Sequence record: ON529857.1
Length of the DNA stretch: 64,000 nucleotides
Strand: one strand, 5' to 3'
Of this stretch, positions 27,922 through 29,094 are shown piece by piece (position 1 is the stretch's first letter; the number at the start of each line of letters is the position of its first letter). A model generated the notes under the pieces. It searched no databases. It saw only the letters and a list, made by a program, of their open reading frames with translations, and had not been told where the DNA came from. A program made the translations under genes and the position numbers.

Positions 27922-28242
27922 CTAGTGGGCGGGGAAGATCACCCGCCCTTGAGGCGTCACATCGTAATCCCACGCGGCGAACAGGGCGGCTTCGGCCAGC
28001 GCGTCCTCGCGCGACATCGATGCGGCGGCCTCGGCGGCTTCCACCGCGTCAATGTCCGCCAGTTCCTCGGCGTAGGCGTCGGGATCGCCGTAGCCGCAGG
28101 GACGGTTGGGGCGGTTGGCGAGCCACGCCTCGGCCTCGGCGAGGGTGATGCGGCCCATGGACGGGCGCGAGCCGTAGTCGTTCTTGTAGAGGTCCGAGTA
28201 GAGGCTAAGGACCGATTCTTCGTGGGTCGGAGCGGGGAACAT
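27922..28242 (-). CDS. hypothetical acidic protein
   Basis: MFPAPTHEE start behind GGAGAGAC; SDLYKNDYGSRP motif. Confidence 0.7.
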   Translation of the reverse strand: MFPAPTHEESVLSLYSDLYKNDYGSRPSMGRITLAEAEAWLANRPNRPCGYGDPDAYAEELADIDAVEAAEAAASMSREDALAEAALFAAWDYDVTPQGRVIFPAH

Positions 28243-28561
28243 GGCGTCTCTCCGGCGGGACCATCCCGCCACATGAGCAATCTAGCAAAGAGAAGTTAAC
28301 AAGAGGTAAACGCCGGGAGGTTTTCTGGCGAAAAATCGGCGCGGGTCCCCGACTTGAATCGGGCAGGGTCCCCGGATCGATTCCGGCGGGTTCGTCGCAA
28401 GTCAGGGCGCCGCCGATGCGCCGGGTCGATTCCCACTCATGGCGCATGAGCAGGCCCGTTCCGATCAGTTGCGGGTGTTTGTGGATCGGCTCGCCACACG
28501 CCGTTACGGCGGTTTTACCGCCCGGCGCAACCGCGCCGAGCAGGTGAATCTTCAACGCCAT
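28205..28561 (-). CDS. hypothetical protein; C-terminal part runs through repeats and next promoter
   Basis: ATG 1 nt after ArfA-like stop; TACG...WES....LTC N-terminal part plausible. Confidence 0.5.
   Translation of the reverse strand: MALKIHLLGAVAPGGKTAVTACGEPIHKHPQLIGTGLLMRHEWESTRRIGGALTCDEPAGIDPGTLPDSSRGPAPIFRQKTSRRLPLVNFSLLDCSCGGMVPPERRHVPRSDPRRIGP
28279..28311 (-). promoter_or_regulatory. CtrA-box-type promoter on minus strand
   Basis: TTTA-CCTCTTG-TTAA (N7) then 9 nt then GCTAGATT; replaces the TTGACA promoter for 27922..28242. Confidence 0.55.
28328..28400. repeat. AATCG-N-GGGTCCCC repeat cluster A
   Basis: Two full and one degenerate copy, ~23-bp period. Confidence 0.75.
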
Positions 28562-28562
28562 G

Positions 28563-28673
28563 TCAGCGCCCCTTGCGGGTGTAGGAACCCTTACCCTTAC
28601 GGGGACGAACCACGCGGGGGCGATAGGCCGGGGTGGCGAGGGCGGCGGCGGCCGGGTTTTTCTTGGGCTTCAT
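28563..28673 (-). CDS. arfA: ArfA-like alternative ribosome-rescue factor (36 aa; not in ORF track)
   Basis: MKPKKNPAAAALATPAYRPRVVRPRKGKGSYTRKGR aligns with E. coli ArfA [27 protein letters not shown]; own promoter and GGAGACACCCC RBS. Confidence 0.75.
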   Translation of the reverse strand: MKPKKNPAAAALATPAYRPRVVRPRKGKGSYTRKGR

Positions 28674-28740
28674 GGGGTGTCTCCGTTGAAAGCGAAGTCA
28701 CCTTTAAAGGAAGAGAGGTTGACTGTCAACCCCTCTTCAG

Positions 28741-29094
28741 TCAGGGCAGGCGCGCCGGGTTCAGCTTCAGCGAGCGGAGGCGAATCGACAGGGCGCCTTT
28801 GGCCGGGCTTCGCGTCGACTTCTCCAGCTTGCCCGTCTTGGCCTTGCAGCAGGGGCAGGCCTTGGCTTGGGTCGGCAGGACGTGGCCCGCCAAGGGGTCC
28901 AGCGTTCCGCGCACAGACAGGGTCAGGGCGAGCCCTTGCAGGGAGGTCAACGCGCCCGAGCGGCGGCGGCGCAGGTCGTCATGAACCGTCAGGCCCGCCG
29001 CAAGCCGGTTGGGCCGCGTTACGGCCACAGTCGAGGTGGAAACGCGGTATCCGCCCGGCAAGAGGCCGCGTGTGTCGGGGATATAGCGGCGCAT
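28741..29094 (-). CDS. hypothetical basic protein with CPCC
   Basis: 117 aa, 2 nt after upstream stop. Confidence 0.6.
   Translation of the reverse strand: MRRYIPDTRGLLPGGYRVSTSTVAVTRPNRLAAGLTVHDDLRRRRSGALTSLQGLALTLSVRGTLDPLAGHVLPTQAKACPCCKAKTGKLEKSTRSPAKGALSIRLRSLKLNPARLP

Follow-up and report, generated by a model that had tools for sequence, protein, structure and literature searches.

A stop-terminated, 36-residue ArfA-like protein encoded by Brevundimonas jumbo phage vB_BpoS-Kikimora and its relatives in phages of Alphaproteobacteria

Textbooks present ArfA as a back-up for ribosome rescue in some Gamma- and Betaproteobacteria, and the feature that marks it out is that it is made from non-stop mRNA. 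The E. coli arfA open reading frame (ORF) contains a hairpin that leads to a non-stop mRNA and to tagging of the product by tmRNA, and ArfA accumulates only if trans-translation fails. The N-terminus of the E. coli protein (~14 residues) becomes ordered when RF2 opens. E. coli arfA encodes 72 residues, and the active form has about 55; residues 15 to 24 form a short helix, F25 and the strand of residues 27 to 30 bind RF2 domain II/IV, and the basic C-terminus, resolved to residues 46-48, forms a loop within the mRNA channel (PMC8012679). The 1-40 truncation is inactive, the K-H motif (residues 44-45) occupies a pocket, and the A18T substitution blocks RF2 activation: the variant binds and recruits RF2, which is docked in the closed form (PMC8012679). 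ArfA/RF2 pairs have been reported to be species-specific, and Thermus RF2 remained closed with E. coli ArfA (PMC8012679).

Other factors do comparable work. BrfA (Bacillus) and ArfT (Francisella) are likewise small basic proteins that bring a release factor to non-stop ribosomes, and BrfA is made from non-stop mRNA (PMC8012679). Neither has a detectable sequence relation to the phage protein described here. Phage-encoded tmRNA is likewise phage-supplied ribosome rescue, but unlike that protein it is an RNA, tags the nascent peptide for degradation, and needs SmpB and alanylation. The related Caulobacter phage phiCbK has a tmRNA. Among Alphaproteobacteria, a search with nucleotide hidden Markov models (HMMs) found arfA in 0 of 2,376 genomes (PMC11633108). 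Feaga et al. described Caulobacter crescentus as lacking an arfA homologue and depending on tmRNA and ArfB, with ssrA and arfB forming a synthetic-lethal pair, and used phage Cr30 for transduction (PMC4235212).

In the literature that we searched, phage ArfA is named in passing only (PMC8953757, PMC12753301); we found no functional study, and nothing on a stop-terminated phage ArfA or on the host distribution of phage ArfAs. Gene g10 of Citromicrobium phage RXM is a listed auxiliary gene (PMC8953757), and gp30 of Pelagibacter phage HTVC027P, an ArfA-domain protein, is highly expressed both early and late, at 3 h and 12-15 h after infection (PMC12753301). HTVC027P gp30 contains the same module as the Kikimora protein and ends a few residues past the motif; it differs in its 24-residue N-terminal extension, its weaker C-terminal motif (GRGSFKRD), and its SAR11 host.

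Brevundimonas phage vB_BpoS-Kikimora (ON529857.1; 312,615 bp) is a sewage-derived jumbo siphovirus (Dolichocephalovirinae) whose host is B. pondensis LVF1; 6 kb of sequence surrounding the arfA-like gene matched this record with 100% identity. We analyzed a window of 64,000 nucleotides of this genome, in which the window coordinate plus 248,000 gives the record coordinate; all positions below are window coordinates unless another source is named. The paper on the isolation of Kikimora lists 29 tRNAs and no tmRNA, does not contain the word "rescue," and does not discuss the arfA-like gene; tmRNA was undetected in all seven Brevundimonas jumbo phages (PMC10070969). ARAGORN detected no tRNA or tmRNA in the 64-kb window, and Rfam gave no matches at gathering thresholds in the window, with chance-level matches only near the arfA-like gene.

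A sequence-only reading of the window had proposed a 36-residue ArfA-like ORF at 28563-28673, and this ORF is present on the minus strand, with an ATG at 28673-28671, 36 codons, and a TGA at 28565-28563; the C-terminal end of the product is RKGKGSYTRKGR. That reading had also described the gene as absent from the ORF track, a description that fails for the public record: the gene is annotated in GenBank as KIKIMORA_04590, and it is missing only from lists with a length floor of 60 amino acids. The assignment to ArfA is thus already public, under the GenBank product name "alternative ribosome-rescue factor." The HMM search that the sequence-only reading had called for agrees, in that the protein matched the Pfam ArfA family PF03889 with 37.3 bits (E=1.9e-9; profile positions 11-42 of 44), against a curated gathering threshold of 25.5 bits. 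Among chains of the Protein Data Bank, phmmer aligned residues 4-36 without gaps with residues 12-44 of E. coli ArfA (E ~5e-5). Searches of the Kikimora protein against NCBIfam and PHROGs gave no match, and DUF7230 (PF23876) did not match it at E<=1.

With tblastn, the same small ORF was recovered from every one of the seven Brevundimonas jumbo phages, from Brevundimonas phage Bajun and Citromicrobium phage RXM, and from the T4-like Caulobacter phage Cr30, where it is unannotated. Over a core of 30 codons compared among seven phages, pN/pS was 0.21 to 0.67 for all pairs differing at a replacement site, and 0.2 to 0.5 for the Kikimora gene against its orthologues; the Kikimora and Gurke cores differ by eight synonymous and six non-synonymous changes (pN/pS 0.30). 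The DNA alignment of these two phages retains the promoter, the leader, and the coding region, and the 3' flank is rearranged. By these substitution counts the gene is under purifying selection, and it is a real member of the ArfA family.

Compared residue by residue with E. coli ArfA (YhdL; PF03889), the Kikimora protein is likewise small and basic, presumably unstructured off the ribosome, and has the KGKGSYxRKG channel motif together with an aromatic residue and an R-x-R-V strand at the RF2-binding positions. It retains N14, L20, P23, F25 (as Y), R26, R28, V29, and nearly all of residues 34 to 44 (E. coli numbering). Y17 aligns with F25, and R18-P19-R20-V21-V22 align with R26-Q27-R28-V29-E30; over residues 26-35 the only departure from E. 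coli 34-43 is T in place of M, and the columns of the channel motif are nearly invariant in 64 aligned relatives. The aromatic position is Y or F in 52 of these 64, and a V or I stands within the strand in 63. The motif itself lies in the mRNA channel, and the recruitment of RF2 is the work of residues 25-30 in E. coli ArfA (PMC8012679), so that the sequence-only reading, which had given both roles to the motif, ran the two together.

The protein is naturally truncated, as had been claimed, and this is so at both ends. Only five residues precede the conserved N-P, so that the first residue corresponds to residue 9 of E. coli ArfA and equivalents of residues 1-8 are lacking; at the other end the TGA directly follows the residue aligned with K44, and H45 of the K-H pocket motif, the hydrophobic tail, and everything else beyond K44 are missing. 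A length of 36 residues plausibly suffices for an ArfA, because an end at K44 lies beyond the inactive 1-40 truncation and slightly short of the resolved residues 46-48. Opposite E. coli A18 the Kikimora protein has A10, in a column that varies in the clade (Lys in 22, Arg in 16, and Ala in 12 of the 64 relatives); the adjacent position 9 is Ala in all 64. The register or the mechanism at the A18 position may thus differ from that in E. coli, and with this column so variable, RF2 activation may work differently or fail altogether.

Relatives of the 36-residue protein were sought with degenerate DNA patterns and with a search of representative proteins. Among 1.84 billion of the latter, 70 clusters matched at E<=1e-3, mostly 33-70 residues long, and at least 24 of the 70 stop within seven residues of the motif. 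The ten representative clusters that were looked up were all metagenomic; the contexts opened were two phage-like contigs (a 166-kb contig of small ORFs and one with a P22-type portal) and one chromosomal contig. A profile of 64 aligned clade members matched E. coli ArfA (E=1e-10), and 63 of the 64 matched PF03889, in line with the ArfA-like character claimed for the Kikimora protein; DUF7230 was matched by 1 of the 64 at E<=0.001 and, among the relatives scanned, only locus L058 scored above its threshold, with four others weak and sub-threshold. The clade consensus is R-N-P-x-A-x-x-L-x-x-P-x-Y-R-P-R-V-V-K-P-R-K-G-K-G-S-Y-x-R-K, and A9, G27, and R33 are invariant in the 64 members. Several clusters of ArfA-domain proteins of ~30-35 residues are also present in the ESM Atlas. 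The pattern V-[VI]-[KR]-P-[RK]-K-G-[KR]-G-[SA]-Y occurred in at least 120 viral contigs and only 12 times in 185,579 species genomes (one genome per species), a contrast that is indicative only, because this single exact degenerate pattern misses AGY serine codons as well as variant residues. None of the 12 genome matches is alphaproteobacterial, an absence that is suggestive; most are ArfAs of Alteromonadales with the longer bacterial N-terminus. Judged from these profiles and patterns, there is a large, mostly viral branch of the ArfA family with an "NP-A-L" N-terminus.

The isolated phages with the module infect Brevundimonas, Caulobacter, Citromicrobium, Erythrobacter, Ochrobactrum, a strain of Rhodobacteraceae, and Pelagibacter, so that all such phages found have hosts among the Alphaproteobacteria. 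In Cr30 the ArfA-like ORF encodes 50 residues (KF301602.1, 11139-11291; L005:1411-1563), scores 27.2 bits with PF03889 against the threshold of 25.5, and lies one gene upstream of the phage RNA ligase. An unannotated ArfA-like ORF of 41 residues lies under the 3' end of gp38 in Roseobacter phage CRP-212 (L218:1204-1329), and Ochrobactrum phage ORM_20 (L216:1120-1416) has a decayed-looking copy from which G-K-G-S of the motif has been lost. One gene of the viral "NP" type, with an ArfA-like product of 45 residues, is located in a GC-rich proteobacterial chromosome from a metagenome (L213:10001-10138), with PEPCK, folC, trpFBA, pyrF, rpsA, cmk, and aroA as neighbors, which shows that this type is not strictly viral.

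Marine viruses also encode fusions of a basic N-terminal part, the ArfA module, and a C-terminal domain, phrog_17747 (for example, L015:976-1332, L020:1617-2033, and L013:7716-8144, with about 40 more loci in IMG/VR). This C-terminal domain was found in podophages of Pelagibacter, Roseobacter, Puniceispirillum, and Methylophilales, and all that tblastn with a fusion-type protein retrieved was this unrelated domain, from pelagiphages and roseophages. Among bacteria, chromosomal ArfAs of Alteromonadales (Psychrobium, Paraglaciecola, Colwellia, and Algibacillus) and of Carnimonas end in ..YLIAA, ..YLMAA, or ..TLAA (L128, L129, L130, L131, L132, L134, L137, and L139). These endings resemble the C-terminal end of the ssrA tag and may form a built-in degron that acts instead of, or alongside, non-stop control.

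The position of the stop codon differs among the phage homologues. In six isolates (Kikimora, Gurke, Papperlapapp, Marchewka, Bajun, and Cr30) the stop lies zero to two residues past the motif (RKGR), and the predicted structure of the Kikimora transcript region does not exceed that of shuffled controls (z = +0.31). The 60-residue RXM homologue has an 11-bp hairpin that starts in the codons right past the motif and then a hydrophobic tail (z = -2.4), and p093 of Ochrobactrum phage vB_OspM_OC also has a hydrophobic tail. A motif scan of IMG/VR gave at least 120 loci, with 78 unique complete ORFs among the matches listed; of the 78 ORFs so listed, 13 stop within seven residues of the motif, 21 continue into a tail of 8 to 40 residues, and 44 carry the module inside proteins of ~90 to 250 residues, mostly 118 to 138. 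Again among the matches listed, 9 of the 21 ORFs with tails have a GC-rich stem and a U-run immediately past the motif (GGGCGG..CCGCCCCTTTT, or GGCCGC..GCGGTC and a T run), followed by the hydrophobic tail, and none of the stop-terminated ORFs has such a stem and U-run. The stop of the latter often overlaps the start of the next gene.

Non-stop phage ArfAs (RXM g10, OC p093, and those of many IMG/VR contigs) belong to the same viral clade as the Kikimora protein, with the same R-N-P-x-A-x-x-L N-terminus and the same core, and they too occur in phages of Alphaproteobacteria; they differ in having a bacterial-style hairpin or terminator and a hydrophobic tail where Kikimora has a stop codon. Since tailed and stop-terminated relatives exist side by side, both regulatory states occur in phages. 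The features of non-stop synthesis, an in-ORF hairpin or terminator and a hydrophobic tail, are missing in Kikimora, and the hairpin-bearing relatives serve as positive controls for their detection. By this comparison the Kikimora gene is the unregulated state. Unlike E. coli arfA, it is stop-terminated, has no RNase III or terminator hairpin in the ORF, and is not expected to be repressed through tmRNA; it is also phage-encoded, with a host-type promoter, in phages of a host class reported to lack arfA. The stop right after the motif had been claimed correctly, and the escape from tmRNA control that had been deduced from it, though itself an inference, is supported by the contrast between the hairpin-bearing relatives and the unstructured Kikimora mRNA with its in-frame stop.

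The genes flanking the arfA-like gene on the minus strand have a common upstream cassette of TTGACA, a 17-nt spacer, a -10 of the TA-A type (mostly CCTAGA or CCTACA), and, ~15 nt further on, the leader AACGGAGACACCCC-ATG. The window contains 35 sites of the form TTGACA-N17-TANA (0.06 expected), 34 of which lie on the minus strand, and the leader or ribosome-binding box AACGGAGACACCCCATG has 19 copies in the window with at most one mismatch, all on the minus strand before annotated starts, with none expected. The arfA-like gene has one promoter-like site (TTGACA, a 17-nt spacer, and TAAAGG) at 28703..28729 on the minus strand, conserved in Gurke, and one exact copy of the leader box at 28671..28687 on the same strand, with the start codon at its end. 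The "own promoter" that the earlier reading had proposed is therefore there as one of the 35 cassettes of the window, with a -10 (TAAAGG) weaker than the CCTAGA and CCTACA of other cassettes. A scan with the strict E. coli consensus found no promoter and no terminator beside the gene, and the promoter is recognized only through the phage's own repeated cassette. Promoter-like elements also lie directly upstream of the copies in the larger Brevundimonas phages and in Erythrobacter phage XM05. The consensus of the Caulobacter housekeeping sigma-73 is TTGACGS / GCTANAWC, and we take the Kikimora cassette, including the CCTAGA/CCTACA form of its -10, to resemble it. Because the cassette looks host-type, it is plausible that host polymerase transcribes the arfA-like gene and that expression is therefore early. 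Contigs of Kikimora and related phages in public sequencing runs were short and scattered, left 28424-28591 uncovered, and are uninformative on expression.

A near-perfect palindrome of 29 nt (GAAGAG.GGTTGAC / GTCAACC.CTCTTC; 28710..28738), centered on the -35 hexamer and largely conserved in Gurke, could be a terminator of the upstream gene at 28741-29094, an operator, or both. More broadly, positions 22779-55466, mostly on the minus strand, form a long array of small genes, each independently promoted, with 35 promoter-like cassettes and 19 leader copies (AACGGAGACRCCCNATG). With at most one mismatch, the 12-mer GTTAACCTTAAC has 50 copies between 25111 and 60809, where 0.03 are expected; it usually lies 60-90 nt upstream of cassettes, often in pairs on opposite strands, and looks like an operator for some regulator; unlike most cassettes, that of the arfA-like gene has no copy of it within 800 nt upstream. 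CtrA control of phage promoters in Alphaproteobacteria has been described (PMC9437464), and the CtrA-box form TTAA-N7-TTAAC occurs five times in the window (0.05 expected). Upstream of the arfA-like genes of phages Papperlapapp and Marchewka stands TTAACCTCTTGTTAAC (L003 and L007, ~1393-1412), a perfect TTAA-N7-TTAA CtrA-box form that overlaps the -35 region; in Kikimora an element with one mismatch precedes the next gene, KIKIMORA_04580 (~28283-28299).

On the 3' side, an ORF of 118 amino acids (28205-28561) starts 1 nt past the stop of the arfA-like gene. It was considered as a gene and rejected: its GC3 is 0.66-0.68, compared with 0.75-0.86 in neighboring genes, and it is not conserved in Gurke, from which ~150 nt of it are missing. 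For these reasons, the 320 nt between the arfA-like gene and the next gene (28243..28562, minus strand, unannotated) were treated as probably non-coding; neither an Rfam family nor a canonical terminator was found in this 3' region. Relative to Gurke, 28273-28561 contains a Kikimora-specific insertion of ~150 nt with short repeats (GGGGACCC.GCCCGATT) and GC-rich hairpins.

The peptide was modeled with Caulobacter RF2 (RF2_CAUVC) by ESMFold2. The median ipSAE was 0.54, compared with 0.00 for the best of three controls, which counts as "weak support." Of 78 solved complexes, 51 reach that mark, as do 2 of 108 mismatched pairs; with scores of <=0.60, no more than 5 of the 78 reach it, together with all 4 passing mismatches. 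The predicted interface comprises residues 5-13 and 16-24 of the peptide and residues 126-136, 173, 191-216, and 314-317 of RF2, and leaves the basic tail free. This geometry is the one expected from the solved E. coli complexes; the score may be model memory of solved ArfA-RF2 structures, and the geometry may in part be so too.

Taken together, these comparisons incline us, with modest confidence, to the reading that the gene encodes a minimal ArfA, a rescue-factor core without the regulatory tail that would provide tag-free, RF2-dependent rescue in the host. Host RNA polymerase would transcribe the gene from its host-type promoter cassette, and translation would stop normally at its own TGA, so that the peptide would come off without a tag irrespective of the state of trans-translation. 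Residues 23-36, the basic C-terminal half, would thread into the mRNA channel left empty in ribosomes that have stalled at the 3' ends of broken mRNAs, and the middle (Y17 to V22) would add a beta-strand to domain II/IV of the host RF2, which would then hydrolyze the peptidyl-tRNA. A host with only tmRNA and ArfB would thereby gain from the phage a tag-free rescue route, and ribosomes would keep cycling when infection or RNA-cutting defenses yield many truncated mRNAs. In this scheme, ribosome binding, RF2 activation, the timing of expression, and the benefit to the phage are what we infer. We counted against it the missing N-terminal eight residues and H45, the variable A18 column, and the weaker -10; a further consideration is that ArfA/RF2 pairs are reported to be species-specific (PMC8012679) and that the host RF2 has had no resident ArfA to co-evolve with.

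An alternative is a peptide that fills the empty A site and mRNA channel of non-stop ribosomes, and may dock closed RF2, but triggers no hydrolysis. Such a channel blocker or competitor would keep tmRNA-SmpB or ArfB off, so that, for example, phage proteins would be spared tagging and degradation or host translation would be shut down. It would fit a clade whose most conserved part is the mRNA-channel motif, whose N-terminus is very short, and in which the equivalent of A18 is often Lys or Arg; in E. coli the bulkier residue of A18T permits binding and recruitment of RF2 yet blocks activation, and the closed Thermus RF2 with E. coli ArfA indicates that activation is easily lost across species (PMC8012679). 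A pure plug, however, needs neither the RF2-contacting strand nor the aromatic residue, which are conserved across very different phages. The bacterial non-stop regulation retained by some clade members is sensible for a back-up rescuer, and trapped ribosomes would cost the phage translation capacity. We think a blocker unlikely, though it is the most serious of the alternatives. A different job altogether, such as binding RNA or DNA or another ribosomal state, with the resemblance to ArfA reflecting shared ancestry only, is suggested by the tiny, very basic peptide and by the module embedded in marine viral proteins of ~90-250 residues with the unrelated phrog_17747 domain, a hint that the module is reusable. 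Conservation in the clade is nevertheless position-specific and tracks the functional sites of E. coli ArfA, not simple charge, and the RF2 fold was predicted to use the expected face; we regard this reading as improbable.

The gene could also have stayed under tmRNA control if most transcripts were cut or terminated upstream of the stop and the product came from non-stop mRNA, which is the rule for bacterial ArfA and BrfA (PMC8012679) and would agree with the in-ORF hairpins of some phage homologues. We give this little credence for Kikimora: its transcript has no more structure than shuffles (z = +0.31), the gap between motif and stop is too small for a hairpin, and the stop, although it shifts by zero to two codons among orthologues, is always present. 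As for a spurious or decaying ORF without function, a frame of only 36 codons in a GC-rich genome rich in chance ORFs invites the suspicion, as does the decayed look of the ORM_20 relative, yet the Pfam match (E=1.9e-9), the dedicated promoter and ribosome-binding site, and conservation with largely synonymous change in seven phages that span three morphotypes make it scarcely credible; conservation effectively refutes it.

A broader proposal goes with the minimal-ArfA reading, and we advance it only tentatively, as possible but falling short of probable: virus-specific, constitutive mini-ArfAs may be a widespread tool of phage takeover or counter-defense, early peptides of 35-45 residues that, free of tmRNA, would redirect host RF2 to clear ribosomes from cleaved mRNAs. 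The hosts, Alphaproteobacteria that include SAR11 and Caulobacter, would have no ArfA themselves. If so, phage translation would withstand RNase-based abortive infection or mRNA degradation by the phage itself, phage proteins would avoid tmRNA tagging, and a minimal functional ArfA would be defined. The comparison places a branch of ArfA in phages of a class of bacteria reported to lack it, with two regulatory states, non-stop and stop-terminated, and the synthetic lethality of ssrA and arfB in Caulobacter together with phage Cr30, which has an unannotated copy, provides tools that are already in hand. Should the 36-residue protein be active, it would show how the RF2 of a naive host can be recruited, and ribosome rescue would join the functions that phages supply in the takeover of their hosts.
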